Shown here one piece after another: positions 1,359-50,699 of a stretch of DNA of 64,000 nucleotides (positions within the stretch are counted from its first letter, which is position 1; each line of letters begins with the position of its first letter). Where the stretch lies: the NCBI GenBank assembly GCA_964247055.1, contig OZ176057.1:5828001-5892000 (forward strand). Direction: 5' to 3'. This DNA comes from Paragordius varius (Eukaryota; Animalia; Nematomorpha). Under the pieces are notes generated by a model. It did not search any database and was not told the origin of the DNA. It saw only the letters and a program-made list of their open reading frames with translations. The position numbers were made by a program, and so were the translations under genes.

Positions 1359-1405
1359 ATATTTTTCACATATCATTTTTTTTAATTTATCTAAAAGTTT
1401 GCTTT

Positions 1406-1451
<46 letters not shown>

Positions 1452-4400
1452 ATAGAAACGCATGGTGAATTAAATTTGTATTAATTAATATTTTATTATT
1501 ATTCTGAAATCAAAATATTGTAATTACCACAGCTTGGAAAATCTAATATATATATATATATATGGCATTTGAAAATTTGAATTACAGTAAAAATTGAAAT
1601 TATACGGATACAAAAAACGTAAAAATAAAAATACAAATGTTATTCAAAATACAAATGTTTATTTTTTTTAAGTATTACTGATTGTTTTAAAAACTGCAAA
1701 TTATAAAATAGTGAAACAATCAATTATGCCTTAAATGATTTTTATCAATTGATTTTTATAGGATAAATTAGGGTTTAAAAAGTAGGTTGTCCCTTAAAAA
1801 AAATTTGTCTTTTTATTTTTACGTGTCTCCGTATAATTTCAATTTTTAGCGTAATTAAAAATGTTATGAAATATTTTAAGATAAACAAATTTAAGAGTGT
1901 CGGATTGAAAAAATATATAAAACTATAGACTTACAGTAACAACCTAAATGCAAAAACATTTTATTTATTATATATGCATTAAATTTCACCCTTAAACGAT
2001 TCAAATTCACCTTTGAACAATTCAAATACACCCTCAAATAAAATATATGTTTTTTAAGATTAAAAACCTATATTTTATATATTTTAAAAAATAAAAATTT
2101 TGTTTTAAATTGAAATAATACTGACAAAATAATAAACTATACCATAAACATATATTTCATATTAATAATGAGTTATATTAGTTAGAAAACACATAATTTA
2201 TTTTTAGGGTGAATGTGAATTGTTCAAAGGTAAATTTGAATTTTTCAAGGGTGAATTTGGTATATTTATAGAATTTCAAATTAAATATTGTATTTAAAAT
2301 TTACCTGTCCCGGGACCTAATAATTCAAACAAAACAAAATATATATATGTAAATTTAACTAAAAAACCAATTGTTAAAGTATCATATTTACAGTCAAAAC
2401 TGAAATTATACAAAATGACAAAACGTAAAAATAGAAAGACAAATATTTTTTTAAAAGACAACCAACCATACTTTTTAAATCTCTTGATTTATTCAATATA
2501 ACTAACTCTTTGTTTTAAATGGAAAATTGTGTAAATAGAGATATATTTTACAAACATAATCAATTCTATATTTTACAATTGTGTAACTAAATAGCTTATA
2601 TGGGAAACATTTAAATTTTAAAAGGTATGGGCTTGTCTTTTAGATAACTATATTTGTCTTTATATTTTCACGTATTTTCCATATAATTTCAATTTTTACT
2701 GTAATATTTGAATGAACTTTTCTTGTAACTTAAAAACTATGTCGCTTTGAGAAGCGATTATAATTATAATTAATAAAATTCCTCCATTCCGCAATAACTG
2801 GTGATAATCGCTATTTTTACAAAAAAACTATTTTTATATAAATTTTAAACTAACTTAAACATCATTACATTTTTAATTTATATTTTACTGAAACAAAACG
2901 TCATAAAGATAAAGTAAAATATTTTCTATTTTCTTCAAGAAACCATTGTAATTATTTGAATTTGATTTTTTGGATATAAGTCATTGTCTTAAATTTTAAA
3001 AATTAGAGTTATAAATTGATTACGATTTCATTTAAATATTTATGTAGGAAAAATAAAATTTAGAAAAAAGTATGGTTTTTATATTACATTATATCTATAT
3101 ATTTTTCCATTTTTATTGTATTTAATTTTCAATTCTATTTTACAAGTTATATAACGCCAAAATTTATTTTGACAATGTTTTCTAATTTAAAATTTTTGGA
3201 ATTTATAATTTAAGAGTTGATAAGATTTGAAAATAAAAATTTAATAAATAAAAGTAAAACTAAAAATATTTACATATGGGCTGTGAAGGCTTATCCACAG
3301 GAGGTTTACTTGGGGGAGGTGCAGGGGTCGTACTTGGTTTGGTCGTATAATATAGGTAACCTTTAAAAAAGGTAACATAAATAAGTAAAATATAGAGATA
3401 AAATGTATTCCATTTTTCAGTCAAAAACAATATTTTTCCCCAAGTAAAAAATGTTTTTACGTGTTTTAGTTTGATTAATTTTCTTGCGTTTAGTTGATAA
3501 AATGTTGCGTTTGCTTGAAAAATGTTGGTTTTGCTTAAAAATATTTAGTTTAGTTCACAATGTTGCCTTTAGTTGAATTATTTGTCTTTAGTTCAAAATG
3601 TTGTCTTAGTTGAAATAATGTTGCGTTCGGTTTAAAAAATATTCACTGTGCCTAAAAAAATGTTGAGTTTATTTCACAATGTTGCCTTTAGTTAAAATAT
3701 TTGTCTTTAGTTCAAAATGTTGTCTTTGCTTAAAAAATGGTTCTCTTTGCTTGAAAAATGTTTTCTTTGCTTAAAAAAATGTTAAGTTTTATTGAAAATG
3801 TCGCGTTGAGTTGAAAAATTTCGTATTTAGTTAAGAAAATACAGTATAAGTAAGATTGCTAGTTAATGCCAGATAACCTATAAATCAAAGGGAACAATTA
3901 TAATTTATAATCCAATTTTAGGCATTTTAACTACCATTTGCCAATAATAATTCTCTTTGCTTTATATGATTATTTGGAAATATTAAATGAAAAATTAGCA
4001 ATGTATATTAACATGCTTTTTTTTCAATGTACAATTAAAATTAAATTATATCAAAATTAACCAAAGTATTAAATAGTTATGATTTACATATTTCATGCAA
4101 AAAATGGGTTAATTTTTTTAACAAAAAAATTTTGTTTTCGGATAACTTATGACCAGCGAATTCATTTGCCGCAAAAATTATAATTTGTTGATCCCTGTAA
4201 CAAATTTGTTTTAACGCAAATCAATATTGTTAATATACGAATTTTTGGTTGATTTTCCATTTGTAAATTTTAAATAGTGTTAATTTATATACTTTATAAT
4301 TCCCGCTCATGTGAAATTTCAAAATAAAACAGTAAATTTTTTATAACTTATAAAACCAGATGATAAAAAAATAAAAAAGGTTATTTTTTAGTTTATTTTT

Positions 4401-6899
4401 TTCATATATAAGTTTTTTACTAAAAAAAGAATGTTATATAGTAGTGAGTTTAGTTGTAAATAATTAAAAAAATAAATTGTAGTTTCATAAAATTTTTGAC
4501 TTTTAAGCATGTTAAAAAACGCCATCTTTTGATGAGATTTTATGGAAATCCTAACTATATGATTTTAGGCTATTTATCGTATGTTGAAAATATCTCTAAA
4601 ATGATAATAAACCATAATATTTCATATTTTATCATTATTTTCTAAATTATCCTTGATTTTCACCCCTTTTTGCCCGATTTCAATTTTCTCTTAATATTTC
4701 AAAAACTAGGTCCTAACCAAATAAAAAATTTTACGGTAAAGAAATTCTCTGGTCATAAGCTACCTCATGAAAAATTTTTTCGTTAAAATTTTTTTTGGTG
4801 GGTATTAATTTAATATTAGGATTATAAAGTAATTTTTAATTCAATATTTGTTTTATATATATATATATATATAGTATTTATAAGTATACTTACCACCTAT
4901 ATTAATTAATAAAATAACATATTATTATAAAGTAAGTAATATCCAATTACAGTATGAGTAAGTATATATTGCTAGAAAGTTATTAATTATTGCCAAATAA
5001 TAAAAACAACAAAGGGCAATATTATTGGCTAATATAATAGTAAAAAGTGAAAAATTAACTATAAGCCAATAATACTTCCCCCTTTGTTGTATATAATCCT
5101 ATTTGGCAATAATTAATAACTTTCTAGCAATGTATTACTCAATAAAAGCTGAAATATAGAGACAAAAGGAAAATTTTAAAGAAAAGCATTATAAAAACAC
5201 AACCATAGCTTTTTTTTAAAAAAATTTGTCCAATAAACTATGGAGTTCTAAAATATATAATTGATTGTGATATTAATATACATTTCTATTTCATAATCGT
5301 AAACATTTAAAAAACATTTAAAAATTCAGCTGTTTTTGAGAAAAAATGTGTTTTTATGTTTTTAGTTTTGTCCGTATAATTTAAATTTTTATTGTATTTT
5401 ACACGTTACTGAAGATATGTATAATTGTAGGGATGCTTATTGCTTTAAAAATAATTTAGACCTTTATCTTTTGTTTTGCAACTATTTATATATAATTACA
5501 GTAAAAATTGAAATTATACGGACGAAACATAAAAATAAAAAGACAAATATTTTTTTCTAAAACACAACCATATATCCTATTAATACCATTTTATAACAAC
5601 CCTAAAATATATAATTAATTATGTTACCAATATATACATCTCTATTTTATACTTTGGAAACAATGAGATAAATTTAAATACATAAAAATTTAAAAGGTTT
5701 ATGGTTGTCTTTTAGAAAAAAAAATTTCTTCTAATTTTTTTTCTTGTCCATTTCATTTTTTACTGTAATATTATATCTATTATTTAGTAGCATAAGTTAT
5801 AAATTTTCATAGCTATAAAGTTTAAAATAAGTTATAAATGACAAAAAACCACTTTTTAACATGTAAGTTTTTTGGTTATTTTATACATGTTATGATTATT
5901 CAAATTACAGTAAAAATTAAGAGAACATTCAGTTACAAAAATTACAGTATTAGTAAGTAAGTATACATTGCTAGAAAGCTAAGAAAACTATTAATATATA
6001 CAACAAAGGGGGCAGTATTCTTGGCTTTTAGTTATTTTTTAATATTTTTCAATATTTCTCTATGTATGCTATTTAGCAAACAAATTAATAACTTTCGAGC
6101 AATGTATACTTACTCATAAAACATGGAATTTTTTAACAAGATAATTACACTTTTTGAACTAAAATCATTTAAAACTCATAATTTTGAGTTGCAAAATGAG
6201 AAGCACTGTAAGCTTTTAAGCTTGTCTTTTTAAATATCTGTCTAATGCCTGTAGATTTTCTATTTTTATTGTAAAAAAAATAAACTCAAAGTGTATACAT
6301 ATATATATATACAGTAAAAATTTAAATTATACGGACAAAACGTAAAATATAAAGATAATTTTTTTTATAAATGACAACCAACTATACTTTTTAAAGTTTT
6401 GATTTTTTTTTCAAAACTCATTAATTTATATTGCAAAGTGTGAAGAGATATATATTACTAACACAAACAATTTCATATTCATCAAACATCAAATAAAAAT
6501 TCAAAAAAAATTAAAAAAGTATGATGGTTTGTTGAAAAAAATGGTTGTCTTTTTTATATTTTTACGTTTTGTCCGTAAAAATTTCATTTTTTACCATATA
6601 TTATTATTATTATTTAAAAAGAAATAACTTACAAAAGGGCGCTATAAAAATATTTATAACAAATATATATATATATATATATATATAACTATATAAATCT
6701 TAATATAAATTACACAGGTAAGAGAGAAATTTTATTGACTATTTTGGTTTTACAGTAAAAATTGAAATTATACGGACAAAAGTTAAAAATATAAAGACAA
6801 ATATTTTTATCTAAAAGACAACTCCCCCATACTTTTTAAAACCTTAATTTTTCTCATATGAGAAGCTATTTAGTTACAATTGTAAAATCAAGAATTGAT

Positions 6900-6943
<44 letters not shown>

Positions 6944-8133
6944 ATTTCACGATTTGTCATTTAAAACAATCAGTTGGTTACATTGTAATAAATCAAAATT
7001 TAAAAAGTATGGGGTGTTGTCTTTTAGAAGCAAAAATATTTGTCCTTTAATTTTTACGTTTTGTCCATCCGTATAATTTCAGATTTTACTGTAATTGGTA
7101 GAAAGGTAATTCAATTTACTATATAATAGCCTGATCTTTTATGTTTAAACCAATTAAAATACAAAAATGTCCAACAAAAGCTCTCTTTACTGTGTATATA
7201 TATATATATATTATATATATATTATAGTAAATAAGGACTTACGATAGTCTATTGAAATATATATAAACAAACATATAATTATAATTTAAACATACAGTAA
7301 AAATTGAAATTATACTACGGACAAAACTTGAAAATATATAAAGACAATTTTTTTTAAAAAAAAGACAACCTGATAAATTTTTAATCTTATATTTTTTAAA
7401 TTTAACTCATTGTAAACTACAAAGTGTTATATAAAAATTTCAATTGGTAACACAATCAATTATGTATTTTACGATTGTAATTAAATGTTTTTTATAGGAT
7501 AAATTAGTAACAAAGTATGGTTGTCTTAAAAATTTGTCTATATATTTACATTTTGTCCGTATAATTTCAATTTTTACAGTAATATATAGATATAATATTC
7601 ATTTAAGTACAGTTAAAATTTTACGCTTAAAAACTCCAACAAAAAAGCAATTTTAAATTTCAATCGATATTGGTTTCAACAAATTATTTATTCAGCTTAA
7701 TAAAATATACCATTTAAAATTTAAATTTACCCTTGACCAAATTAATTTTACCCTCGAACAATTCAAATTCACCCTTGAACAATTCAATTTCACCCTGAAA
7801 ATAAATTATGTCTTTTCGGGTAGCTAATATAACTCATCCATTTCTAATATATATTTATGGAGCCTATTTTTCAGTAGTATCATTTTGATTTTAAACAAAT
7901 TTTTTTTGCCAAAAATATAAAAATATATAGGTAATTTTTAATGTTAAAAACCGATAATTAATTGTTTAAGGGTAATTTTGAATTATCTAAAGGTGTATGC
8001 ATATTTGAACTGTAAATGGTATATTTTTTAAGGCATAGAAAATTTTAAAGTATGCTGATAAAAACTTACTGCAAGGATAGCCTTCTACATTATAAGCCAT
8101 CATCAATAATAGCGCCAGAAAAATCCAATTCAT
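1359..8133 (-). CDS. Secreted Tyr/Cys/Pro-rich protein encoded by phase-1 micro-exons (micro-exon gene A); 3' end unresolved
   Basis: Hand-spliced exons, all AG/GT: 8133-8070 (signal peptide MNWIFLALLLMMAYNVEG-YPC, donor GTAAGT), 7248-7243 (6 nt, GTAAGT), 6641-6633 (9 nt, GTAAGT), 4896-4894 (3 nt, GTAAGT), 3360-3274 (87 nt, GTAAAT), 2316-2305 (12 nt, GTAAAT), 1943-1935 (9 nt, GTAAGT), 1542-1528 (15 nt, GTAATT), probably 1390-1359 (32 nt, GTAAGC). Joined open frame: MNWIFLALLLMMAYNVEGYPCNYPPFCGYLYYTTKPSTTPAPPPSKPPVDKPSQPICPGTGCYYFPSCDKLKKMICEKY. Candidate last exons: 1302-1276 or 277-182. No family recognised. Confidence 0.68.
3470..3835. repeat. Degenerate minisatellite, 19-21 nt units (e.g. 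ttagttcaaaatgttgtct)
   Basis: About 18 consecutive imperfect units read directly; lies in an intron of micro-exon gene A. Confidence 0.8.
4950..5144. mobile_element. MITE family C (TA-CAGTATGAGTAAGTA...), Tc1/mariner-type ends
   Basis: Long inverted arms (attgctagaaagttattaattattgccaaata / tatttggcaataattaataactttctagcaat). Related copies at about 5945-6118, 32515-33044 (with nested MITE-B) and a partial copy near 43880-43995. Confidence 0.7.
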
Positions 8134-10259
8134 AATTCCTTTTTCTTATAAGATCTCCTCTAAAGAAAATATAATAAAATGATCAAAAAATTTATACCAA
8201 CAAAATTACAGGCAGAAAAGAATATATAAGGGTAAAAGTGTGGAATATATCCAAAAAAAATTTAGATATTGCGATTTTTTACAGGGAATTTTATATGTTG
8301 TTTGTTGTTTATATAAGATTATGTTGGTTTTAATGACAATTTCAATTTATCTATAAAGGACATACCATACCCTAAAGCTTTATTCCATAGTATATATATA
8401 TGTAAAAAATTTTTTAATATACCACATATCCTATTATAATTAAATTAAGAAAGAATTTTTTTAATAAGATTGTTCAAAACAAATTTCTCAAACCAAAAAA
8501 AAGCTTAAAGCTAAATATACTTGTTTTTGTGGTTTGTGGTAAATAATATTTTATATTCTAAATACCACTGTATTTACTTAATAACAATCACATTTAGATT
8601 GAATGACACTTTTAAACGACTCATATATAATTTTTCAACAATATAAAAAGGGTGACATAAAAGTATATGCAAAAATTATATATAAAAGCAACGCAATTCC
8701 TGATAAAGTTCGATAATACAATTTATAGGAGGAACCACAGAATAAAGTATAATTGATTTAATTCCCACAGTTTTAGTTTTTTTTATTTACCCCTTTAGAT
8801 TTAGAGATTGTGGTCTATTAAATACAAGGGGCTATACTCCATATCATATTGTGGCGAATTTTTACCCCTCTTATACCTTTTGAAATTTTTTAGGTAGAAT
8901 CACTACTTGAGAATCCCGAAAAAATTAAAAATTGTTAATAATTTTATAACTAAAAAAAAATTTTTAAAAACCATTGTATAGAATTAATTAGTATCAGGAT
9001 GCCATATTTCGTAAAATCAAAAGCACGAAAAGATATTTAGACGGATACATAGACGATCGAATCACACAGACGCCATTTTTTCATCTGACAACGCCAAACA
9101 CAAAAAAGTGGAGCTTGCCATAAAAAACTACACCTTATCCTTCAAAATAATCAAAATAATTATGTATCGAAATTCGTGTGCCTTACAAAAACTTTTGAGG
9201 AGAATTTCTATTTTACTCAAAACAAAAAAACAGAACAGTGGCTGTGAAAGTCAGCGTATAGAAACAGATGGTGAATATGCGTCGAAATTAATTTAACAAG
9301 CTATGAATTCAGTAAAAGACAGTGGACGCTTTGGTTAACCAAACAACTGTGAATACGATAAAGTCCAAGAATTAACAATTATTGGCAAAAGCATTTCAAG
9401 TAAAAAGTTCCTTGAATCTGTAGGTCCCACAAAACGGAAAATTTTTGTGAAATCCTGCTTCAAAGTCTATACGTTTTTTCATCGAATTATGACGGCTAAT
9501 GAATAAAAATCAATCGCTTTATTTTGTAAATTAAAAACGGAAAAACTAGTAATTTTTACCCCTGATAATCTGGTTTATGAATTAACACCTTCCAAGTGAC
9601 AAGAAATCATGCTCTGTGAGTGATAATAAGTATACACTTTCAAAAACCCAAATTATTACACAAAGGGTAACAAATGATTATTTTAAACCTATTTGTATAA
9701 ACATTTTATGGAGATTATTTTTCGTAGCTTACCATTGCAATTTGAAGTTATAGATAGAGTACTTCCTATCAAGCAATATTATGGCTTTATGAAACTTTAG
9801 ATTTAAAGGAATGTATGTTTATTATTTACTATAAAGATGGCGTTTTCCGCCGTTAAAATTTGTTATTTTCTGAACTAAACCTATTTTTATAAATTAAAAA
9901 ACCACAGGGATGTATGAGTTAGAAAAATCTATCAAAGAGATTTTGCCACGTGACATTGGTCTCAGCAAAAGTAGTGAACGACATTTTAAAATCTCTTAAA
10001 CGTAAAAACTATTACGCACCCGCTGTAGTCTTTTGAAAACTGAGGTTACTTTGCTGCCACTGTAAAATTCCTGGTTTATGTCATAATATGTTACCGTTTC
10101 AGGACTTATTCATATGTTTTGAATGAAGAAAGCAGGATTGTGTAAATCCACCTTTGTATATCCTTGTAAAACAACGTAAAGGAATTTCAAAACCATCCGT
10201 TAAAAAAGGATTAATAAAGTTTACCGCAAATGATAATCAGTTTTTTTGGAATAACTTAT

Positions 10260-11446: not shown

Positions 11447-11830
11447 ATGAAACATTTTAAATTCCTATGTTTGCTAAGTTTGATTTGCGCTCTTTGGGTT
11501 TCTCAAACGGTTAAAGCTGACATTGAAGAACACGAACCCGAAATCGAAGGGCAAGAGGGTCGCCATTGGGGTTACAGTAAGTGTTTTATACATAAAACTA
11601 AATTTTTTGATTTTTTTTTCCACTACTATTTTTGAGGAATATTCTAAAAATTTCTAACGCGCAGCCCTCTAATATTATATGTGCGTCCCCCTGATAAAAT
11701 TGAAAATCCATAATTTGCAAAAATTCGCTGATAAATTGGATGGAACTTGAAAAAATTATATTATTATAATGTGTTTTCATTTTACAGTCTCTTATATGTC
11801 CGAAATCTAATAATTTATTTTTGAAAGAAT

Positions 11831-27713: not shown

Positions 27714-30700
27714 TGAAGGTGAATAAATCATTTAGTTTAGTAAAATCTGAAGTTTTAAAAATGTATTAGATTACCCAAAGATTTGTAATATAAAGCGTTT
27801 TTATATTGTTTCCAACTTGTCTAAAAACTACTATAATATACGCTTTAACACAATTTCCTACAAAAATTTCCTGTATAATAGCAAGATATGCATTTTTCTA
27901 GCATATATATCTTTTATTTTCACATGTTGGCATTGTTTTTTAAAAAAATTCTTATTTACTGAGATAAATAATTATTTGGAACTTTCAGAGCTTACTGATT
28001 CAATTTTAAATTTAATAAAAATATAATGTTGCAACTTTGAACTGGAAAATATAATTTACAGGTTAATTAAAATGTTTATGAAGATTCTATACAATTATAA
28101 TAAAGGATATAAAGAACCATTTAAAAAACATGCAATGATTTAAATATTTTTGAATAGATTAAAGTTTGTGAACATTTAAAGCAAAGCATTTTGCAAAAAA
28201 ATAGGGTATATATTTAAGAAAATTTAGTTTTATAAAATATTTTAGCCCATATATACTTCATATATCCAGTAAAAATTAAAATTATACGGACAAAATGTAA
28301 AAATATAAAGACAAATTTTTTTAAAAAGGCAACCATACTTTTTAAAACCTTAATATATTCAATAAAAAACATTCAATAACAATCTTAAAATATATAATTG
28401 ATTGTGTTACCAATTTGAATTTCTATGTTGTACTTTGTAGTTTAAAACATTATAAATTAATCATATGGTTGTTTTTTTGAAAAAAAATATTTGTCCTTAT
28501 ATTTTCATGGTGTGTCCTTGCGTACAATTTCATTTTTTCCAGTATTTAATTTAAGGTTTTCCATGTGTTTTAAAAATTTATATATATATATATATATATA
28601 TAAATATTGACATCGATTATTTTAACATGCGATAAATATTTCAAAAAGTACTTAAAACTTTTTATTTTTTTAGGAATTAATTTTTATCTAAAAATATATA
28701 CCACCAAGTATGCTTTGTAAACTTTGGGCAAGCTGGGGATCTATATTAAAAAAATATTTTATATAAAATGCTTAAATAATCAAAATAAGTTTTGTTAAAA
28801 ATATATTTATGATGGATATGAAACTAACTTTGCAACAGAGGAGAAAGTGCTGGTAGCTTAGGTCCTAAATCTAAATATAAAATTTAAATTTTAAAGATGT
28901 AAAACGAAAAAAAAAGGCAACTCTTTTTTTCAAACGACAGCCAACCATATTATACATATATATATATATATATATACCTTATATTTTGTACAGTAAAATC
29001 TGAAAATATACGGACAAAACGTCAACATATAAAGACAAATATTTTTCGAAACCTTAATAATTAATTAATTTTAATCGTAAACTATTAATTTATTGTGCTA
29101 TCATTTCTATTTTATATTTTGCAGTTTAGAGTTATATTCATAAAAATAAGATTCAAAAAATGTGGTTGTTTTTTAGAAAAATGTATATGTCTTTATATTT
29201 TTATGTTTTCCCAATTGTCTATATAATTCAATTTTAACTCTAAAATATTTTAAAGAATTTCAATAAATTTTATAAAATGTCTATGTATTGATATGTCAAC
29301 GCATCTTTTAAAATAACACCCTGTGCCTGTAAAATGCATTTTTGCAAAAAATAGGTCACTAAATATTTTTTTCAACTTTATTGCCTTTGTGATAAGTGTT
29401 TTATATACAGAAGTGATTTTAAATTCCATCTAAAAAAAGTATTTAAAGAATTTAACAAAAATACCATTTACAATGCAAATTCACCCTAAAAATAAATTAT
29501 GTGTTTTCGGGCTGCTAATATAACTCATCATTAATATGAAATATGCCTTGATGGGATAGTCAATTATTTTTTCAGTATTATTTTGATTTAAACAAAATTT
29601 TATCTTTAAAAACTATATGAAAAAAAATAAGTATTTTTAAATCTTGAAAAACACTGGATTTATTTTAGAGTGAATTTGAATTGTTCATGGGGTGAATTTG
29701 AATGGTAAATGGTATAAATGGTAGCGTTACGAAGCCTAAATACAGTAAAAATGGAAATCATACAAACGAACCGTAAAAATATAAAGACAAATATTTTTTT
29801 CTAAAGAAAACCCTCAACTTTTTTAAACCTTAATTTTTCTTTTATAAGCTATTTAGTTACAATTGAAATATATAATTGATTGTGTTTTCAATTTATATCT
29901 CTATTTCATATTAAAAATCAAGATTTAAAAATATGAGCAGTTGTCTTTTAGAAAAAAATATTTGTCTTTACATTTTTACACATTGTCCGTATAATTTCAA
30001 TTTTTCCTTCCTCTATGTCGTCTATGCCATTAAAATTATTATAAATTGGATTGGGTAGGGTTATAAAAATATAAATTATAAATTTATAGATGTAAAAATT
30101 TAAAAATATTTTGAAAAAAACTTTAAAAATTATTTTTATTTTTACAAAACAATTTTATAAATACCTTGCGGTTGATTGACCACTTGTTTTTGTTGCAAAA
30201 TGTGTTGCAAATATTGAGAAACTATAACATTAAATTATAAAATGTTTTATTTATTAACCAATATTTCTATTTAAAAAAATGTTTTATTAACCAATATATC
30301 TAATTTTTTTGAATAAAAAAAAATGTTAAATAAATTCTGCATATATTCATGACCATGAGATTGATTCAAAAATAGCCAATTTTTTGTTAATTCCAAAGAT
30401 GATCTCAAAATAAAATATACTTTTTAGCTATAATTTAGCCCTTGGAAATATATTTAACACTTCGATTCAAATTGGGGTATCTAAATACCCAGACTAAATT
30501 TAAATTATTATTTTTAAAAAACTACTGAAGGAAACGGTCCCAATTAAAATTTATGCTTCTATCCTGATAAAAATTATATAAATATGCCAAAAAATCTTGA
30601 TAAAATTTTGGTTTAAAAAAAAGTCCATCTCAAACTCCTTCGACGCCATTTTTATTTTACAAAATTTTTGTTAAATATCGTCTTTATTTAATTTTAAGGG

Positions 30701-33700
30701 TAAAACTTAAGCTAATTTTTTATATAAATTACCTCTAACATTCATAGAAATAGGAAAAGCGGTTTAGTTTGTATAATTTTTCAATTTTACAATTTGATAC
30801 ATGTCACGTTGACGAAATTTTACCTTTCGGTTTTAGCTTAAAATAAGTATTATCAAGTATTTTTGAATAAAATTTTTTATATATTTCGGTTTATTAATGT
30901 TAGATAAGTGCAAAATTTTGCCATGGTTTCGATTCCTTCTATATTTTTTAAAAAATTTAATTTTTAACAGGCCTGGGGTATCCAACTACCCCAATTTGAA
31001 TCGAAGGACTAAAATGAGTGTGTTGTATCCAAGTGTTAAACAAAAAAATAGTTAATATTTAAAGAATTTTAATATTTAAAAATAATTTAGTTTAGTAATT
31101 ATTATCAAAAATTTATATATTATTTTTTAAAAAAACAATATCTAATTACAACCATAAAATATAATAGCTCTATTAATTCTTAAATTTATTTTTATATTTA
31201 GAAAATAATATGGGTGACTTTCTTGTAAAAAAAAGTTCTGTCTTTTTCTATTTAAATTTTTGTCCGTATAAATGCAGTAAAAATTGAAATTATACAGCTG
31301 ACAAAAGGTAAAAACATAAAGACAAATATTTTTTTGTAAAAGACAACCCCATACTTTTTAATACCTTAATGTTTTCCATATAAGCTACTTAGTTACAATC
31401 GGAAAATATATAAACTATATTTCTATTCTATACTTTGGACTTTAAAACAATTTGTTATGTAATTAAAATAAAAACGATTCAAAAAGTATGGTTGGTTGTG
31501 TTTTTTAGAAAAAAGAATTTGTCTTTATTTTTTTACGTTTTGTCGGTATAATTTTAATTTTTACTGCATATATTAATTTATAAGAATTTACTAGTTTGTC
31601 CAGGGATTGGCTTGGAATCCAATGATGCTAAATTTATACATTTTTATATTATTTAGCAATTTTTCAAAAAAAAATTAAATATGGGCATAGATGAAATCTA
31701 AAGTTTTAATGTTGATAATATTTGATTCGGAAGCGTATAGTAAGATTGTTAATTATAAAAGTTATTAAATAAAAATAGTACTAAAGTTTTTATTATCCTA
31801 CATTTTATAGCACAAAAACATATTTTTATAATATCCGATAAAAATTTTTATCAGGTAACAAGGGTAATTTAAAAGTCATTCTAAAAAAAATTACATTAAT
31901 AAACCATTTACAGATCAAATTCCCCCTTGAAAATTCAAATTCCCCCTTGAACAATTCAAATTAACCCTTGGGCAATTGAAACACCCTAAAATAAATTATA
32001 CGTTTTTTAAAATTAAAAATTACTTATATATATATTTTGATATTTTTAAAAAAGGAAATTTTGTCTAAAATAATTACAATACACTGAAAAAATAAACTAT
32101 GCCATAAGAATATATTTTATATTAATGATGAGTAGTTATATTAGCTGCCCGAAAACACTTAATTTATTTTTAGGCTGAATTTAAATTGTTCAAGGGTCAA
32201 ATTTGAATTATTCAAGGGTAAATTTAAATTGTTCAAGGGTGAAATTTAAATTGTAAATGGTATATATATATATATATATATTTATATATAGATGTATTTT
32301 ACCTTGAGAATTCTGGATTTTCATCAACAATTGTTGAAGTTGATTTACTAAAAGTTTCCACAAAAAATAATTACAGGAAAAATTACTATATAACTAAACA
32401 AAGAAAAAAAACTAAAATTATTTATTTTAACTCAATGACACGATTAGATTGGAAAAAATTAAGATTTAATAATGTCGTTTTTATAAAATTGTCTTTCTTT
32501 GAGTTTCTGAATACCAGTATGAGTAAGTATATATTGCTAGAAAGTTATTAATTATTGCTAAATAACATATGCAGCAAAGAATTGTTATTGGCGAATAAAA
32601 TAGTAAAAAGTGAAAAAATAATTGTACACCCTTGAACAATTCAGATTCACCCTAAAAATAGATTGTGTGTTTTCGATATAACTCATAATTAATATATAAA
32701 TAGATCTTTTTGGCATAGTTAATTATTTTTTACATAAATTATTTTAGAATAAATTTGAGTTGTTCAGGGGTGAATTTGAATTATTCGAGGGTTAATTTGA
32801 ATTGTTTAAGGGTGAATTTGAACTATCAATGGTATGTATATAATGCTAGAAAGTTATTAATAATTGCTAAATAACATATATATATATATATATAGCAATG
32901 AGATTTATTATTGGTGCATATAGGAATAGTAAAAAGGGAAAAAAATAACTATATAAGCCAATAAAACTGCCCTTTGTTTTATATGCTCTATTTGGCAATT
33001 GGAATTAAGAATAATTTTCTAGCAATGTTGTATACTTACTCATATACCATTTACAATTCTAATTCACCCTTGAACAATTCAAATTCACCCTTGAACAATT
33101 CAAATTCACCCTTGAACAATTCAAATTAGCCCTCAAATTAAATATTTGCTTTTTAAGATTAAAAATTACCATAATTTTTATATATTTTTAAAAAGTAAAA
33201 ATTTTGTTTAAATTAAAATAATACTGAAAAATGATAAACTATAACATAAACATATATTTCATATTAATAATGAGTTATATTAGTTTGAAAATACATAAAT
33301 TTTTTTAGGTTGAATTTGAATTATTTGAATTGTTTAAAGGTGAATTTGAATTGTTCAAGGGTGAATTTGAATTGTTCAAGGGTGAATTTGAACGTAAATG
33401 GTATACTATAATTTCAATTTTTACTGTAAATGCATAATAAATTTTAGGAATTACCATTCATCTGTTCTGTCTGCGGTTTGGGTTCCATATCTAAATTTTA
33501 TTGATTATATTTATATTATTTGAACTAATAAAGTTAAATATTAATAAAATTAAATTGGATTTCCAAATCACAATACCTTGGTCCAAGTTTTGTTTAATAA
33601 TATCTAAAAAAATTTACACAGTAATATTTGAAATTATACGGGGACGGACAAAACGTAAAAAAATATATAGACAAATATTTTTATTTAAAAGACTAACAAC

Positions 33701-33782
33701 CCCATATACTTTTTAAAATCTTAATTTTTCACATTAATAGTTATTTAATTACCATTGTAAAATATAGGATTGATTGTGTTAG

Positions 33783-33821
<39 letters not shown>

Positions 33822-36713
33822 TTCATAATTTGCCATTTAAAACAATATTGAAATTAAATCTCAAGGTTTAAAAAGTATGGGGTTGTCATTTAGAAAAAAA
33901 TATTTGTCTTTATATTTTTACGTTTTTTGTCCGTATAATTTCAGTTTTTACTGTATATTATAAAATTTATAAATGATATAAACTATTTGATTTACTATAC
34001 CATTCACAATTTAAATTCATCACCTTAAAAGTTAATTATGTGTTTTCGGGCAGCTAATATAACTCACATTATTAATATAAAATATATCTTTAAGGCTTAA
34101 TTTCTTTATTATTTTAATTACAAACAAAATTTTTAGAAATATAAAAAAATTAGTTTATTTTAAGGGTGAATTAGAATTGTTCAAGGGTGTGAATTTAAAG
34201 TGTAAATGGTATATATTATATGAAAAAATTCAAAACTTTTTTTAACAAAATCTTACCCATCAGATAATTTACGAAGGCCTTCTTTTCGTCTTCTAAAACA
34301 CAAATATATGTTTCAATTGCGCAATATAAATAAATTGAATAATTTTTTACGGATAATTAAATTATACTTGTTTTAAATTTCTCCTCTAAAAAGTCATCAA
34401 ACTCTTGAAAATGTTCTAAATCATTATCGGAGATTGATTGTTGAGTTTGCATTGTTTGAGGTTCCATAGAATCCCTAGGAGCAGATGGCGCATTTTCTAT
34501 GGGGGGTGGGGGTCCTAATTTTTATGATCAAATTTTTTTTTATCCAAAATATTAGAAAAAAAAACATTTTAAAAAGCTAATTTTTTATGATCAAATTTGA
34601 CTTTTTTTTCGTTAAAATCAGTCGTAGTACTCTTTAAGGTGTATTGATCAGTATTTCACAGTAAAAATTGAAATTATATACTACGGACAAAACGTAAAAT
34701 ATAAAGACAAAAATTTTTATCTAAATTCTTAGCGATTTACTAAATTATCATTGATTGTGTTACCAATATACGTCTCTATTTTATAATTTACAGTTCAAAA
34801 CAATGAGTTATATTTAAAAATAATTGAGTCTAAAAAGTATGGTTTTAGAAAAAAAATTTGTTCTTAAATTTTTACGTTTTGTCCGTATATTTTAAGTTTT
34901 ACTGCATTATAAAATAATATTTAATTTAATAATAATTTTTTTTTATCCAAAATTAAAAAAAAACACTTTAAAAAGCTAATTTTTTAATTAGAGAGTTTTT
35001 TCGTTAAAATCATATTCTTTAAGGCGTATTTATCAGTATTTCACAGTAGAATTTGAAATTTTATAGGGACAAACAAAACTTAAAAATTTAGGGACACATA
35101 TTTTTTATTTAAAAGAAAAGCATACTTTTTTGAAACTTAAGTTTTCACTTATGAATTATTTAATTAGACGTATAATGGATTGATTCTTTTAAATAAAATA
35201 TTTGCCTTAATATTATTTTTGAGTTTTGTCCGTAAAATTTCGTTTTTTATTTTACTCTCTTGATTAACAAATACTTTTTTATACTAGCCCCTTCTTTTAT
35301 TATCAATTGTAAAAATTGAAATTATATAGTGACAAACAAAACTTAAAAATATAAAGACAAATATTTGTTTTTTTAAAAGACAACAAGCCCATACTTTTTA
35401 TAAACGTTGATTTTTTTAAATTATAACTCATGGTTTTAAACTACAAAGTTGAAATCGATATGTATATCGATAAAACAATCTCAATTATATATACCATTTA
35501 CAGTTCAAATTCACCCTTGAACAATTCAAATTCACCCTCGAACAATTCAAATTCACCCTCGAACAATTCAAATTCACCCTTGAACAATTCAAATCGACCC
35601 TATAAATAAATTATGTATTTTCGAACTAATATAACTCATTATTAATATGAAATATATGTTTATGTTATAGTTTATTATTTTTTCAGTATTATTTTAATTT
35701 AAAACAAAATTTTTATTTTTTAAAAATATAAAAAAATATTGGTAATTTTTAATCTTAAAAAGCATATATTTTATTTGAGGGTGAATTTGAATTATTCAAG
35801 GGTGAATTTGAATTGTTAAAGGGTGAATTTGAATTGTTCAATGGTGAATTTAAAATGTAAATGGTATATTTTAAAATTGTTGTAATTATATAATTTATTC
35901 TAGAAAAATTAAGGTTTATTTAAAAAAGTATGGGGTTGTCTTTTTAGTAAAAAAATATATTTGTCTTTATATTTTAACCTTTTGTCCGTATAATTTCAAT
36001 TTTTACTGTAAGATTAAGTTTAGTTTAACTTTTCTAATATCTTTTTTATTATAAATTAGAATAATTATTCTTATGGGTGAACTAATCGAAATACTTACAA
36101 AGACAAGTTGAAACAATATTTAACAAAAGATATCTGGTTCAAAACTTAAAATTTTAAATATTTTATAAAACGAAATATAAAATAAATATATACGTTCAAA
36201 TAGCTTTTTAACTGCTTCCTCAATGAATCCTGTATAAAATTAATATATAATTATAAATAATTATTTTAAATTATATATTATAATATAAATTATTTTACTA
36301 TTTTCTACAGCATCTGTATTATATAAAAAAATTAAATAATTTATATCTAAATATATACCATTCACAATTCAAATTCACCCTTGAACAATTCAAATTTACC
36401 CTTGTAAAATAAATTATGTGTTTTCGGGCTAATATAACTCATCATTAATAAGTAATTTATTCTTATGGCATAGTTTATTATATATTAATTTTAAACGTAA
36501 TTACCCTTTTGTAAAATATAAAAAAATATAGGTGATTTTCAATCTTAAAAAACAGATAAATTTTAGGATGAATTTGAATTTTTCACAAGGGAAATTTGAA
36601 TCGAGGGTGATTTGAACTGTAAATGGTATATTTGTTAATTAATAAAAAAATTATCAACATACCTTTTAAACTTGTCATCAATTTCGTTATATAGTCAAAC
36701 ACTAAATCAAATA

Positions 36714-36754
<41 letters not shown>

Positions 36755-38805
36755 AAAAATATATAATATATTTAAAAAATTAATTTAAACTTAAATATTT
36801 ACGTGTGTAAATAATTAATTTTTTAGCAAGTTAGTTTATTTCAAAAAAGATATCACGTTTTTCAAATATATGGTGGTCTCCCAAACACTTTTAATCGTTT
36901 GCTTTTTATTTTTTCTGTTTTACTCTTTACAAATTATAATTTTTACAGTGCGTTTATGTGTTTAATATTTTCTGTTTAATTAAGCTCTCTTTACTTTTTA
37001 TGTTTTTGCTCCTTATAAATTTAATTTTTACTGTATTTATACTTCAAAAAAGGGGTGTTTAATATGCGGCCTAGTAAAATAGTACTTTGGCCCACGAGAA
37101 ATTTCAATTACAAAATTACTAAGAAATGGAGGTAAAATTTTTTTGTTAAACAAATCTACCCATATTTCAGCAATGAACTAGCGAAAAAAATGTTAAAATA
37201 AACAGTATGTTTTACAATCTTACATACCATTTACAGTTCAAATTCACCCTCAAACAATTCGAATTCATCCTTGAACAATTTATATTCACCCTAAAAATAT
37301 ATTTTGTTTTCAATCTAACATAACTCATTATTAATATGAAATATCCTTTTACCACATAGTTTTTATTATTTTTTCAGCAGTATATTAGTTTTAAATATAA
37401 GTTCATATTTTAAAAATATTAAAAAATAAAGGTAATTTTTAATTATCAAAAACACATAATTTATTTTAGGGTAAATTTGAATTGTTCAAGGGGGTGAATT
37501 CGAATTGTTCAAGGGTGAATTTGAACTGTAAATGGTATATTTGGCGCCAACTGCCGTATTTTGTAGGATACCTACCCCTGCCTTAAATCATATTAAATTT
37601 TTAAAATCAAACTTTTTGTAAAAAATTCTTTTTGCTTTTTTGAATGTCCATTGGGCGGTGCGCATTCATATGAATCGCTTTCATATTCATCAACGTTGTA
37701 ATATGCTGGACTACAGCCTATACATAATAAATATCCAAAAAAATATTTAGATTAGATTATAAATTATATAAAAGTGTTGTAGAAATTTTAATAGCCGACA
37801 AGTAAAAATATAAAAAGACAAACATTTTTGCTTTTTAAAAGGAACAACTGGTGTACTTACTCTTTTTTAAAACTTGATTTTTCGATTTATGTTGGTTAAT
37901 TGGTAATACACATCAGCGTATGTTTAGAAATATACAGTTAAAATTACAATTATACGGACAAAACGTAATAAATAAAGACAAATTTTTTCTCTCAAAAGAC
38001 AACCATATTTTTTAAACCTTAATTTATTTAAAAAGGATCTCATTTAAATAAAATCGTCAAATACATAATTGATTGTGCTACCAATTTATACATGTCTATT
38101 ATATACTTTGCAGTATAAAACATTGATGAGTTCAATTTAAAAAGTATAGGGTTGTCTTTTAGAAAAAAATATTTTTACTTTTTGTCCGTATAATATAATT
38201 TTTTACTGTATTTTGCCCTTAATTAATAAAACAATTGTAATGTTATAGGGTTGGATAAAATGTTTAATTTTAGCCATTTGTTGTTTTTACCCATACCCAA
38301 CTGTATTACCAATTACTTAATTATTTATATAATAAAAATTTCAAGGTTTAAAAAGTATCTGGTTGTCTTTTGAAAATAATATTTGTCTTTATATTTTACG
38401 TTTTGTCCCACTATAATTTGAACGAATATAATATCTAGATTTTCCAGCATCATACTACACCCCTCCAGAAATAAAAGAAGCATAAAAATATCTGAAAAAT
38501 AATTTAAAAAAAAAACTAACAAAGAATTTTAAAATACTTAAAAAGTTATTTTAAAAGTAAGTGATAATTTAAATATTTTTCTTTTAAACTTAAATATTTT
38601 TATCATTTCAATTAAACTTAACTATAAATATACAATTACCTGGGCGAGATTCAACCAAATCTAATACATTAAAAATATGACATTTAAGTATAAAAAAATT
38701 AATTTTTATAAGTCAGCAATATTTTTTTAAAAAAAATTATTTACCATGTTTCGTGACAACACAAATCAAGAACAAACTCCAAAGTAGTATTGAGATTGAT
38801 TTCAT
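27714..38805 (-). CDS. Secreted Gln/Leu/acidic-rich protein encoded by phase-1 symmetric mini/micro-exons (micro-exon gene B), at least about 249 aa; 3' end unresolved
   Basis: Hand-spliced AG/GT exons: 38805-38745 (signal), 38660-38640 (21), 37717-37613 (105), 37581-37576 (6, tentative), 36701-36663 (39), 36313-36299 (15), 36229-36194 (36), 34514-34368 (147), 34292-34257 (36), 33490-33455 (36), 32347-32303 (45), 31627-31592 (36), 30221-30165 (57), 28864-28829 (36; alternative in-frame AG gives 42), 28740-28702 (39), 27746-27714 (33). Joined: MKSISILLWSLFLICVVTKHDLVESRPGCSPAYYNVDEYESDSYECAPPNGHSKKQKEFFTKSRVFDYITKLMTSLKDAVENRFIEEAVKKLFERPPPPIENAPSAPRDSMEPQTMQTQQSISDNDLEHFQEFDDFLEEKFKTKDEKKAFVNYLMDMEPKPQTEQMNVNQLQQLLMKIQNSQASLDSKPIPGQTISQYLQHILQQKQVVNQPQGPKLPALSPLLQNPQLAQSLQSILGDFTKLNDLFTF. 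The exons are GC-richer than their flanks. Confidence 0.72.
30458..31035 (+). mobile_element. Non-autonomous piggyBac-like element, copy 2
   Basis: TTAA at 30454-30457 and 31036-31039; CACTT...AAGTG ends; internal copy of the left-end motif inverted near 30986-31007. Confidence 0.82.
35309..36007. mobile_element. MITE-A with nested MITE-B (35494-35864)
   Basis: The MITE-A left and right halves are separated by a complete TA-flanked MITE-B. Confidence 0.85.
37227..37535. mobile_element. MITE family B copy in an intron of micro-exon gene B
   Basis: TA-CCATTTACAGTTC...GAACTGTAAATGG-TA. Confidence 0.88.
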
Positions 38806-47013: not shown

Positions 47014-50000
47014 TTAAACATAATGCAAAGTTGCAAATGCGATTGATAAAAGTGAAATTGTATTGTGTAAATATTTCCTTCGACCATCATCTTTATATAT
47101 GAGAATACAGGGAGGAGCTGTATGGGTTTTGATTGGGCTATCGCCACCAATGGAAAGCGGGTCACGAGGTCCGCGAGCACGTGCCTCCGTTGCCATGGTG
47201 ATTCTTCCAACGGGAGTAGGAATGACAGAAGCAGTATTTAAATGAGCAATAATGGTGGAACGCATAAGGGGTGTTAGGGTGGGATCACCCAAAGATCGCA
47301 AAATCTATTTGATGAAAAAAAGCGAACGAATTATATCAAAGGCGAAACATAAAGACATTCTTTTTTTTCAAAGGAACACTTTTTGAATATTTTTTTATAT
47401 AAAAAATTGATGATTGTTTAAAATGGCAAAGTGAGGTATAATGCTAACACAATCAATTGTATATATATTTTAAAATTATAATTAAATAATTTATAGTGGA
47501 AAAATTAAGGGTTAAGTATGGGGTTGTTTTTTAAAAATAATATTAAAGTTAAACAAAACGTAAAGACAGATCTTATTTTTGATTCCAAAAGAATACTTTT
47601 TTTTTCTAGGATTAATTTTATAATTCCAATTGTAAAATATATATAACAATTGATTGTGTATGTTAAATTTGGTCCGTATAATTTCGAATGTTTGTCATAA
47701 TAAAAAAATATATGTCGGGACAAAGTTTATTATCATTAATAAAATAACTATTTCTGCCAAAAAATTTAATATTTCACCCTTAAATACTGTATTATTTTGA
47801 TTCTACATATAAATATAAGTTTTTTAAAAATATAAATAAATACGATTTTTTAAATATTTTTTTTAGAAAATATGAAAATTTTATTGTTTGTAATTAATCA
47901 AACAGAATACAGAAAAAATAATAAACTACTATGCCAAAATAAGAAGGAAATTATTATTTAAAAATAATTTAATTTTATAGGTAAATTTGAAGTGAAGAAA
48001 TATATATATATATATATAATATACCATTTACAATTCAAATTCCCCCTCGAACAATTCAAACTGAAAAATAAATTTTATCGAGCTAATATAATTCATTATT
48101 AATATGAAATATATCTTTATGGCGCGCATAGTTTTATTCATTTTTCAGTAAAAAATTTTTATTTTAAATAAAATTTTCATTTTTTTAAAAATATATAAAA
48201 AATAAAAGTAATTTTTACCCTTAAAAACACAAATTTTATTTTTAGGGTGAATTTGGATTGTTCATTCAAGGGTGAATTTAAAGTGATGATAATATATATA
48301 TAGTTTTATTTTGTTGACATTCCTAGTAATATATTTAAATTTATTTAAATAATTCTTAAATTTTTATTGAATTAGCTCTATAAATCTTATATATAACTAA
48401 TTCCTAATCTAATTCCTAACCTAAATCCCCTATATATACCCTATTTTTTTATGTCATTTGTCCAATAATAATTGTTTTACGCTTTAATAATGTAATATGA
48501 TAGATATAATAAAATAAATTTTAACTAAAATTATAATTTGAAAAATACAGACATACATACTTTATTCTTTAAATGGAATTTAGCATACTTTTTATATGGT
48601 TACAATTTCAATAATTGGCTTTATATGCCATTGTATAAATCTTGAGAACAAAAAACGAAAAAAATCATTTTAATTTAATTTTATTATGATTTAAATTTTC
48701 AAACTTTGTTATTAATAATATACCATTTACAATTTAAATTCACCCTTAAACAATTCAAATTCACCCTTAAACAATTCAAATTCACCCCTAACTAAAATAT
48801 ATATTTTTTAAGATTAAAAATTACCAATATTTTTATATAGCGTTATAAGAAATAAAAATTTTGTATAAAATTAAAATTATATTGAAAAAAATAATAAACT
48901 AAGCCATAAAGATGTATTTCATACTAATAATGAGTTATATTAGTTGCCCGAAAACACATAATAAATTTTTCAGGGGTGAATTTGAATTGTTCAAGGGTGA
49001 ATTTGAATTGTTTAAGTGTGAATTTATTTTCAAAATTGAAAATATACCATTTACAGTTCAAATTCACCCTTGAACAATTCAAATTCACCCTCGAACAATT
49101 CAAATTCACCCTAATAATAAATTATGTGTTTTCACTAATATAACTCATTATTAATATAAAATATATCTTTATGGCATAATTAATTATTTTTTTCAGTATT
49201 ATTCTAATTTAAAACAAAATTTATTTTTTATAAATATATTAAAATATAGGTAATTTTTAATCTTAAAAAACATGTTATTTATTTGAGGGTGAATTTGAAT
49301 TCTTCAAGGGTAAAATTGAATTGTTTAAAAGTGAATTTGAATTGTTCAAGGGTAATTTTTTTTCAAATTTAAAACCATACCATACCTGATACTTACAACA
49401 CGGATCCCAACTCCAAAAAACCGTGTATAAAAGAGTGAAAAAAGCCGAAGTTCCGGCCCCGACTAACGTTGCAATGGTTAACCAATCTTTAGGAGAATTA
49501 AAGAAACTTCTGGAAGGAATAACATCTCTGGAATAATTGTAGGATTGATAATTATAGGATTGATAATAATTGTCACCAAAATATGGTGACATAGGACCGG
49601 CTGATTGTCGCGTCCGACGGGACGAGATGAGCAGATGATTACCCAAGTATGTCATAAGCGTTTGGGCCAAGGCACCGGCCCGCCTCAAGTGTCGCAATGT
49701 TATACATTGTAGCGCTAACGTCGCTAAACCCGATAAAACAGCTGATTTATGGAGAAAATTTCCAACTGTGATCCACTTGACTGTGTATTCACTCAAGACT
49801 CGATCGTAAATTAGGATGATGGGTTTACGGGCTTCAATAGCATTTTCAAAATCTATCGTTGCACTTAAGAGTGGTTGAGATGAAATCAGCTGTTTCCGGT
49901 CGTGGTGAGGGTTCAATAGCTCTTCAGGAATAAGCAAAGGTTGTTGTTTGCTATTTGTTGTAAGGTTATAAAAACTTTGCGATTCATCATAATACGATTG

Positions 50001-50699
50001 GGGGTATATGACCTTGAGCAAATCATTTGTTTTATCATCGCAAACTTCAAGAGGCAGGACGCCATCTCGACTTTGCGTCTCATATGGTGGAATAATGAAA
50101 TCATCCATAGAAGCAGTTTCGACCTCTTCTTCGTCATGATTGGTGTTGCTATGACAACCGTCAGATTCGGTCATGTGAGCATAAGCATCCAATGAAGGTT
50201 CATCTTTGGATAGATGATGATGTTCGTCTGCTCCATTCTTTTTATTATTCGTCATCAGCAGCTGTTTTTGCTGTAAAAGTGATTGTTGTTGAACTTTTTT
50301 TCCTTTATCTACTAAGGCCGCAGATTTTGTTTTAGGTTTGTTTGACTTTAAAGAGGAAGTAGTTGGAAACTCATCAGGGTTTTTAGGTGAATCCGAAAGT
50401 GTGGAAACTGAGGTGATAGATTGAAGTCCATCCTCCTGGCTGTGTGCTTCGGACAAATTTGGAGCGACAAATTCGTCTGATTCTAGAAATTGTTTAACAC
50501 AGCTCAAAATTAGAGAAAGCGTAAAATTTTTTAAATAAAAATGAGTTATTTAATTATATGAAACACTGTTCATTAAATTTGGAATATATTATAAAATTTA
50601 AATTCATCTCGATATAATATATATCTATGGAATTTAGTATTCAATAATATCAAAACGTGTATATATTAAAAATTTATTAAAAATGTTACCTGAAATCAT
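47014..50699 (-). CDS. TMEM11: Mitochondrial transmembrane protein 11 (PMI homolog) with long extensions, about 465 aa
   Basis: Conserved motifs WITVGNFLHKSAVLSG, LYTVFWSWDPCCKYQ (donor CAG|GTATGG at 49386/49385) and, in the last exon 47304-47014, PCILIYKDDGRRKYLHNTISL. The track ORF starts at TTG; inferred first exon 50699-50690 (ATGATTTCAG|GTAACA) spliced to 50482 restores an ATG in frame. The exon 1 call is inference. Confidence 0.9.

Follow-up and report, generated by a model that had tools for sequence, protein, structure and literature searches.

A candidate chain of 3- to 15-nucleotide exons in a predicted secreted-protein gene of Paragordius varius

Introduction

Micro-exon genes (MEGs) combine a signal peptide with a coding sequence (CDS) most of which is divided among very small symmetrical exons; these are separated by long introns and differentially spliced, and the genes have been described as confined to platyhelminths (PMC4350168). 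The exons of MEGs measure 3-81 bp, and their introns reach up to 5 kb (PMC10526429). Here, we report on a candidate gene with a comparable architecture, gene A, on the minus strand of a 64,000-nucleotide (nt) stretch of the genome of the nematomorph Paragordius varius (contig OZ176057.1, positions 5,828,001 to 5,892,000). This whole stretch is called the window, and all positions are counted from its first letter. An earlier note, made from the sequence, had proposed that a secreted-protein gene built from phase-1 exons of 3-15 nt lies between positions 8133 and 1359, and our analysis followed up that proposal. No paper linking Nematomorpha with micro-exons was found in the literature collection searched.

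Two other systems are relevant to this locus. The bicycle genes of aphids encode secreted proteins and contain many small internal exons, nearly all of which start at codon position 2; they have approximately 17 exons on average and a minimum of 5, form families hundreds strong in Hemiptera, and encode proteins with paired Cys/Tyr motifs (CYC, usually two) that are without homologues by sequence (PMC9168663). Splicing of exons of 3-15 nt is also real in both animals and plants, although annotation routinely overlooks such exons, as illustrated by the 3-bp exon of Drosophila homothorax and by plant micro-exons of 15 nt or less (PMC7392893, PMC8831610).

Exon chain of gene A

Our reading of the minus strand supports a model in which gene A is a real, unannotated protein-coding gene that extends from approximately position 8165 to approximately position 1470; we put the probability of the full model at about 0.58. 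Some version of gene A is likely to be real. Re-reading the sequence placed all eight segments of the earlier note at the same minus-strand coordinates, to the base. The elements of the model are as follows.

8191..8196, minus strand: TATAAA box, 58-63 nt 5' of the ATG; a possible core promoter, judged from sequence only
8160..8175, minus strand: strong acceptor-like tract ATTATATTTTCTTTAG, 27 nt before the ATG, as read from the letters
8070..8133, minus strand: exon 1, 64 nt; ATG, predicted signal peptide MNWIFLALLLMMAYNVEG, then YPC and 1 base; phase 1; donor GTAAGT
7243..7248, minus strand: micro-exon 2, ACTATC, 6 nt; completes Asn and codes for Tyr; acceptor caatag, donor GTAAGT
6633..6641, minus strand: micro-exon 3, CGCCCTTTT, 9 nt; Pro Pro Phe; acceptor ttttatag, donor GTAAGT
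4894..4896, minus strand: candidate micro-exon 4, GTG, 3 nt; completes Cys and starts Gly; acceptor aatatag, donor GTAAGT
3274..3360, minus strand: exon 5, 87 nt, 48% G+C (GC); GYLYYTTKPSTTPAPPPSKPPVDKPSQPI, Pro/Thr/Ser stalk; acceptor ttttttaaag, donor GTAAAT
2305..2316, minus strand: micro-exon 6, GTCCCGGGACAG, 12 nt, 75% GC; completes Cys, then Pro Gly Thr; acceptor attattag, donor GTAAAT
1935..1943, minus strand: micro-exon 7, GTTGTTACT, 9 nt; completes Gly, then Cys Tyr; acceptor gcatttag, donor GTAAGT
1528..1542, minus strand: micro-exon 8, ATTTTCCAAGCTGTG, 15 nt; completes Tyr, then Phe Pro Ser Cys; acceptor tatattag, donor GTAATT
1504..1527, minus strand: candidate micro-intron GTAATTACAATATTTTGATTTCAG, 24 nt, GT..AG, in frame and stop-free, as read from the letters
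1492..1503, minus strand: end of the CDS and poly(A) signal; AA, TAA stop at 1501-1499, AATAAA at 1497-1492
1543..8069, minus strand: seven phase-1 introns of 821, 601, 1736, 1533, 957, 361 and 392 nt

The internal pieces (6, 9, 3, 87, 12, 9 and 15 nt) are all multiples of 3 and all in phase 1, and every junction of the chain splits a codon, as had been proposed. When joined, the segments read through 68 amino acids (aa) without a stop and contain the 50-aa string of the earlier note; the coding length of about 240 nt given there was too high, the measured value being 210 nt including the stop. The six micro-exons account for 54 of these 210 nt (26%), or 141 of 210 nt (67%) when the symmetric 87-nt exon is added, and the bulk of the CDS is held by the 64-nt and 87-nt exons. 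A T-rich tract and an AG precede every internal piece, the acceptor being TAG in six cases and AAG in one. The donors are GTAAGT in five cases (exon 1 and four micro-exons), GTAAAT in two and GTAATT in one.

At the 5' end, exon 1 reads from ATG to GCA followed by gtaagt. An in-frame TAA at 8148-8146 (minus strand) lies upstream of this ATG and fixes it as the start, whatever the role of the ATTATATTTTCTTTAG tract at 8160-8175, which could represent a 5'-untranslated-region intron or a trans-splice acceptor. The TATAAA box is weak evidence when taken alone, its hexamer being frequent in DNA of 21% GC.

At the 3' end, two forms of the protein can be read, both terminating at the same stop. Removal of the 24-nt segment GTAATTACAATATTTTGATTTCAG gives a 69-aa precursor ending in ...YYFPSCE, in which AA and the carried G form the codon for Glu; its retention gives 77 aa ending in ...FPSCGNYNILISE. 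Micro-exon 8 may instead be the start of a terminal exon. We did not accept a last exon ending at 1359, as implied earlier: that piece (1390-1359) is 32 nt long, has a GC content of 12%, is asymmetric and so breaks the symmetry of the chain, and termination at 1501-1499 is simpler.

An alternative in-frame donor, GTAAAC preceded by CCAA, lies within the 87-nt exon at 3304-3310 (minus strand), after position 3310; its use would make exon 5 a symmetric exon of 51 nt with a stalk 12 codons shorter. Further exon candidates with relaxed donors in the introns were rejected as AT-rich fragments of miniature inverted-repeat transposable elements (MITEs) or because of phase-1 stops (e.g., a 45-nt piece ending at 6114).

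Comparison with chance

The GC content of the locus is 21%, and donor-like hexamers of A and T are therefore frequent, but GTAAGT is not. GTAAGT occurs 12 times on the minus strand of the window. Six of the copies fall within the 6.6 kb of gene A, and five of these are donors of the chain; the sixth (minus strand, 6113) belongs to a repeat. Two other copies in the window are donors of exons supported by open reading frames (ORFs), that of an antistasin-like gene at 11577 and that of an MTFR-like gene at 49396. Several more, in a recurring ATGAGTAAGTAT context, look repeat-derived, and most copies of GTAAGT in the DNA of the window are thus real donors or pieces of transposons.

A scan for micro-exon candidates covered both strands and all three phases of the window in stretches of 5.8 kb. 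A candidate consisted of an AG, a segment of 3-15 nt in threes with an open frame, a pyrimidine-rich acceptor and one of the three donor hexamers. Six candidates were found at gene A, as against two at most in any other 5.8-kb stretch of the window. In Markov shuffles of the region (2000 trials each), six or more candidates were reached in 0% of the trials at order 1, 0.3% at order 3 and 0.35% at order 5; the higher-order shuffles are conservative because they retain part of the real sites. Such a test of chance chains had been named beforehand as a possible refutation, and its outcome favours the chain (P at most 0.35%).

The composition of the micro-exons also sets them apart from their surroundings. 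Together they have a GC content of 50% (27 of 54 nt), against a background of 21%, and CGCCCTTTT and GTCCCGGGACAG belong to a small number of GC peaks in the locus, GTCCCGGGACAG being the highest. Approximately 4 of the roughly 19 residues that they encode are Cys and approximately 4 are Pro, whereas base composition predicts, by our estimate, about 2% Cys codons and 1% Pro codons. The pattern C-x-Y-x-P-x-C recurs at the two ends of the predicted mature peptide, which supports real coding sequence because recurrence of a motif is not to be expected in a chain assembled by chance. In addition, the ATG is preceded by an in-frame stop, and the last piece leads straight into a stop and AATAAA.

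Predicted protein

Exon 1 codes for a predicted signal peptide, MNWIFLALLLMMAYNVEG, whose hydrophobic core spans 11 residues and which has V at -3 and G at -1, and in this respect our rule-based judgement agrees with the earlier note. The mature peptide would comprise about 51 aa, including 14 Pro, 7 Tyr, 5 Cys, 5 Thr and 4 Ser. It contains two caps, CNYPPFC and CYYFPSC, with the common pattern C-x-Y-x-P-x-C, and these are encoded by separate sets of micro-exons with differing intron positions. The sequence between them, TTKPSTTPAPPPSKPPVDKPSQP, probably forms an O-glycosylated stalk.

The odd number of Cys residues and the many Tyr residues suggest that the peptide may be covalently cross-linked to a surface or within an extracellular matrix. 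The product would fit a small, cross-linkable component of the extracellular space or the surface, as suggested by its composition only. The same Cys/Tyr/Pro-rich composition is the only basis for the more specific proposal of a host-interface, adhesive or cuticle/cyst protein.

Comparison with described systems

Like schistosome MEGs, gene A has a first exon for a signal peptide, tiny symmetric exons of a single phase and introns of hundreds to thousands of bases, and it would yield a small secreted product without known domains that ORF finders miss. Its micro-exons (3-15 nt) lie at the smallest end of the MEG size range, and the animal whose genome carries it is not a flatworm. A further feature of the MEG design is expression in secretory glands or at host-facing surfaces. 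The description of the gene as MEG-like holds for the signal exon, the symmetry and the long introns (361-1736 nt), but not for homology to MEG families: no protein was found to have three 5-residue words in common with it, and no Pfam family matched. The earlier statement that this architecture defines MEGs is not supported; in MEGs very small exons contain most of the CDS, and in gene A the micro-exons contain 26%, or 67% together with the symmetric 87-nt exon. Gene A is known from its sequence alone, whereas differential splicing of MEGs is documented (PMC4350168).

Gene A resembles the bicycle genes (PMC9168663) in its predicted secreted product, its small internal exons, its paired Cys/Tyr-containing motifs and its lack of homologues by sequence, and also in exon phase and number: all seven internal exons of gene A begin at codon position 2, and its 8-9 exons exceed the minimum of 5. 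In contrast to the bicycle genes as described there, gene A contains no C-Y-C, its caps having the pattern C-x-Y-x-P-x-C, and it is a single gene of 8-9 exons with no paralogue in the window and no homologue in the word-based protein search. Gene A is probably a MEG- or bicycle-like design in a third lineage and a member of neither family.

The micro-exons of ordinary genes are single and occur in conserved, domain-coding genes, whereas gene A has six consecutive ones in an orphan gene for a secreted peptide. According to Patthy's exon-shuffling rule, phase-1 introns are said to follow signal peptides and phase 1-1 modules to occur in extracellular proteins. Gene A conforms to this rule in that its signal exon ends in phase 1 and its internal exons are all 1-1; however, classical 1-1 modules are whole domains of at least 100 nt, and the exons of gene A are 3- to 15-nt fragments of a motif.

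Expression, homology and reading frame

Several observations weigh against the full model, the first group of which concerns the reading of the exons themselves. The signal peptide was assessed by eye. The micro-exons are all frame-neutral and open in all three frames, so that only exon 1 determines the phase and none of them is required by the frame; for exon 5, two of the three frames are open. The least secure member of the chain is the 3-nt exon GTG, for which chance alone is an explanation at about 10%: five 3-nt candidates of the form AG-NNN-donor occur in 128 kb (both strands), and about 0.1 would be expected by chance in that intron. The site and the frame that had been claimed for this exon are present, but it cannot be inferred from the frame or from the cysteines; exon 5 starts with GT, and skipping of GTG therefore keeps the Cys and loses only one Gly (Gly28).

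These points bear on an alternative in which the gene is partly real. Exon 1, the 87-nt exon and the last exon would be used, the shortest pieces (above all GTG and ACTATC) would be decoys, and the protein would be shorter. Exon 1 joined directly to exon 5 does stay in frame, with no micro-exon needed, a 3-nt site has the chance expectation given above, and unused copies of GTAAGT exist inside repeats of the window. We nevertheless regard this alternative as unlikely: the cluster of six candidates is far above background, perfect sites flanking the GC-rich CGCCCTTTT and GTCCCGGGACAG would very rarely arise by chance, and a protein lacking micro-exons 2-4 and 6-8 would have neither the Cys/Tyr caps nor the motif common to them.

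The second group of observations comes from searches for expression and homologues. Sequencing runs X3-X7 are labelled as RNA and carry the same species label; they are small sets from 2015 and 2017 with 1-30 million letters of contigs. Runs X1, X2 and X8 are DNA; contigs of X1 and X8 continue the exon into the intron and the repeat matches are massive, which identifies these two runs as DNA. The read comparison covered positions 2250-8249, a region that includes exons 1-6. Four sampled words of exon 5 were present in X1, X2 and X8 and absent from RNA runs X3-X7, and the RNA of X3 and X4 gave three spurious 34-nt matches on 2250-8249, none of them on exons 1-6. The 68-aa query had no homologue among proteins of 37-119 aa in a collection of 5.8 billion, none of which shared three 5-residue words with it, and the gene A protein matched no Pfam family at E values up to 1. 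Tblastn searches of the window with exon 1, exon 5 and the full protein returned self-matches only and hence no paralogue. With no transcript, homologue or paralogue found, the gene A model is supported by internal evidence alone.

A further alternative is that there is no working gene at all, the chain being either a product of chance or a decaying, unexpressed relic. In its favour, the transcript was not found in X3-X7, no homologue was found in the protein collection or in Pfam, and the locus is crowded with transposon copies. However, the shuffles and the real-DNA controls reject chance, and the splice sites, ATG, frame, stop and poly(A) signal are all intact, with exons and splice sites free of MITEs. 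Given also the small size of the RNA sets, we consider a non-functional locus very unlikely.

Gene B (27714-38805) was considered as a member of the same family and rejected; its candidate exons code for unrelated peptides. Run X8, which carries the label of another organism, contains a 244-nt contig identical to window positions 3305-3548 across the exon 5/intron boundary, and an X8 contig on 8083-8249 (promoter and exon 1) shows 4 mismatches and 4 gaps. X8 is low-depth DNA from the same or a very close species, differently labelled.

Inclusion or skipping of the micro-exons

The symmetry of the micro-exons raises the possibility of a MEG-like system for variation, in which the exons are skipped in combinations and produce a pool of secreted peptides that vary, also in Cys, at an interface with the host or the environment. 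All 64 skipping combinations of the six micro-exons remain in frame and give 64 different proteins; our reading of the junctions, all of which are intra-codon, showed that the ORF ends one codon early in 24 of the 64 forms. The design also matches that of published MEGs with documented differential splicing (PMC4350168).

There are also arguments on the other side. RNA from the locus, and hence any isoform, was not found in X3-X7, and only 26% of the CDS lies in micro-exons. Consensus-strong donors favour constitutive inclusion over regulated skipping, and gene A has five such GTAAGT donors. Skipping would break the shared C-x-Y-x-P-x-C caps, which are seemingly the constrained part of the protein. 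Bicycle genes have the same design, and exon skipping is not mentioned for them in the available part of the source (PMC9168663). We therefore regard a variation system as quite unlikely; the strong consensus sites and the shared cap pattern favour constitutive inclusion of the micro-exons.

Repeats in and around gene A

The introns of gene A consist mostly of repeats, namely MITE copies, blocks of a 21-nt unit, an inverted-repeat element and a tandem array of 19/119-nt periods; their very high copy number was confirmed by read depth in the DNA runs. The MITE family, for which BLAST gave as many as 126 matches in the window, measures approximately 300 bp and has terminal inverted repeats of the TACAGTAAAAATTGAAATTATACGGACAAAACGTAAAAAT type; these inverted repeats are approximately 50-60 nt long and include the TACAGTAAAAATTGAAATTATACGGACAAAACGTAAAAATATAAAGACAA type. 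Examples within the introns are listed below.

1576-1860: MITE copy
2417-2679: MITE copy
5352-5741: MITE copy
6310-7117: MITE copy
7278-7596: MITE copy

No repeat or MITE is inserted in any exon or splice site of gene A. Exons 1 and 5 are unique DNA, and unique islands between the repeats coincide with micro-exon 2 (7235-7255, 21 nt), micro-exon 6 (2302-2338) and micro-exon 7 (1876-1945). The possibility that the micro-exons are parts of repeats was rejected: where BLAST matches cover exons 3, 4 and 8, they are alignments of MITE or (TA)n sequence that were extended too far, and the letters of these exons are absent from the repeat copies aligned across them. We also rejected, as a simple explanation, the creation of the introns by MITE insertion in the manner of introners; the DNA at the splice sites and on either side of them is unique, and the MITEs are internal to the introns. 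The location of the splice sites in unique DNA indicates that the MITEs enlarged pre-existing introns and did not create them.

Other repeats of the locus were recorded as follows. A 21-nt tandem unit (GGTGAATTTGAATTGTTCAAG-like) occurs in both orientations at 7699-7807, 1978-2038 and 2208-2259. The 200-nt bin containing 7699-7807 had the top summed contig depth in both DNA runs over 2250-8249, which shows that the unit is a very high-copy element. Intron 4 contains a tandem array at 3484-3832 with nested periods of 19, 38 and 119 nt. An inverted-repeat element is present at 4946-5135 and 5937-6133, and its arms contain ATGAGTAAGTATACATTGCTAGAAAG. This element carries perfect GTAAGT look-alikes at 6113 on the minus strand and at 4958 and 5957 on the plus strand, all decoys within introns; further copies are found at 32523 (plus strand) and 33039 (minus strand), and the ATGAGTAAGTAT context is common to them.

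Neighbouring genes

The neighbouring antistasin-like gene has a signal-peptide exon at 11447-11577 (plus strand) that ends in phase 1 with the donor GTAAGT, and a near-copy of this first exon begins at 16228. A long open exon at 49275-50507 (minus strand) matches the Pfam family Mito_morph_reg (mitochondrial morphogenesis regulator) with an E value of 1.4e-21. A phase-1 GTAAGT donor at 49396 lies inside this MTFR-like ORF, indicating that the true exon ends before the ORF does.

Discussion

Under the full model, a pre-mRNA of approximately 6.7 kb would be processed to an mRNA of approximately 270 nt encoding a 69-aa precursor, or one of 77 aa if the 24-nt segment is kept. An 18-residue signal peptide would be cleaved, and a peptide of about 51 aa would be secreted, with a Pro/Thr/Ser stalk between two Cys/Tyr-rich caps. 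An exon of 3-15 nt is too short to bind the complexes of its 3' and 5' splice sites simultaneously. These exons would thus have to be spliced stepwise: after removal of one flanking intron, the micro-exon would be recognised as the end of a larger exon. The GTAAGT donors, with their near-perfect complementarity to U1, and the T-rich TAG acceptors would aid such a process, and insertions of MITEs would have enlarged the introns later.

The fragmentation of gene A would most simply be a constitutive gene design, common to many secreted-protein genes of this genome. The gene appears to be unexpressed, or expressed at a very low level, in the RNA sampled, and its expression is presumably specific to a stage or tissue. 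A broader and quite improbable proposal is that hairworm-like animals independently evolved a class of phase-1 micro-exon-chain genes for secreted proteins, a third origin of the MEG/bicycle design. Gene A would then be an extreme form, with constitutively spliced 3- to 15-nt exons and a 24-nt intron, and some members of the class would skip cassettes and thereby vary their Cys/Tyr caps at the host interface.

The micro-exon design is among the oddest of gene structures, and in blood flukes and gall aphids it has been linked to the interface between parasite and host. If RNA confirms gene A, the design of micro-exon secreted-protein genes extends beyond flatworms and sap-sucking insects, and a third parasitic lineage with it would, if true, argue for convergent pressures. 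Gene finders and ORF scans are blank over the 6.7 kb of this locus, so the secretome of such genomes is possibly badly under-counted. Six exons of 3-15 nt in succession, the shortest possibly of 3 nt, beside a possible 24-nt intron would constitute a demanding natural substrate for the study of splice-site pairing and, if real, would provide a natural test bed for the way in which the spliceosome copes with several successive exons that are too small for exon definition.

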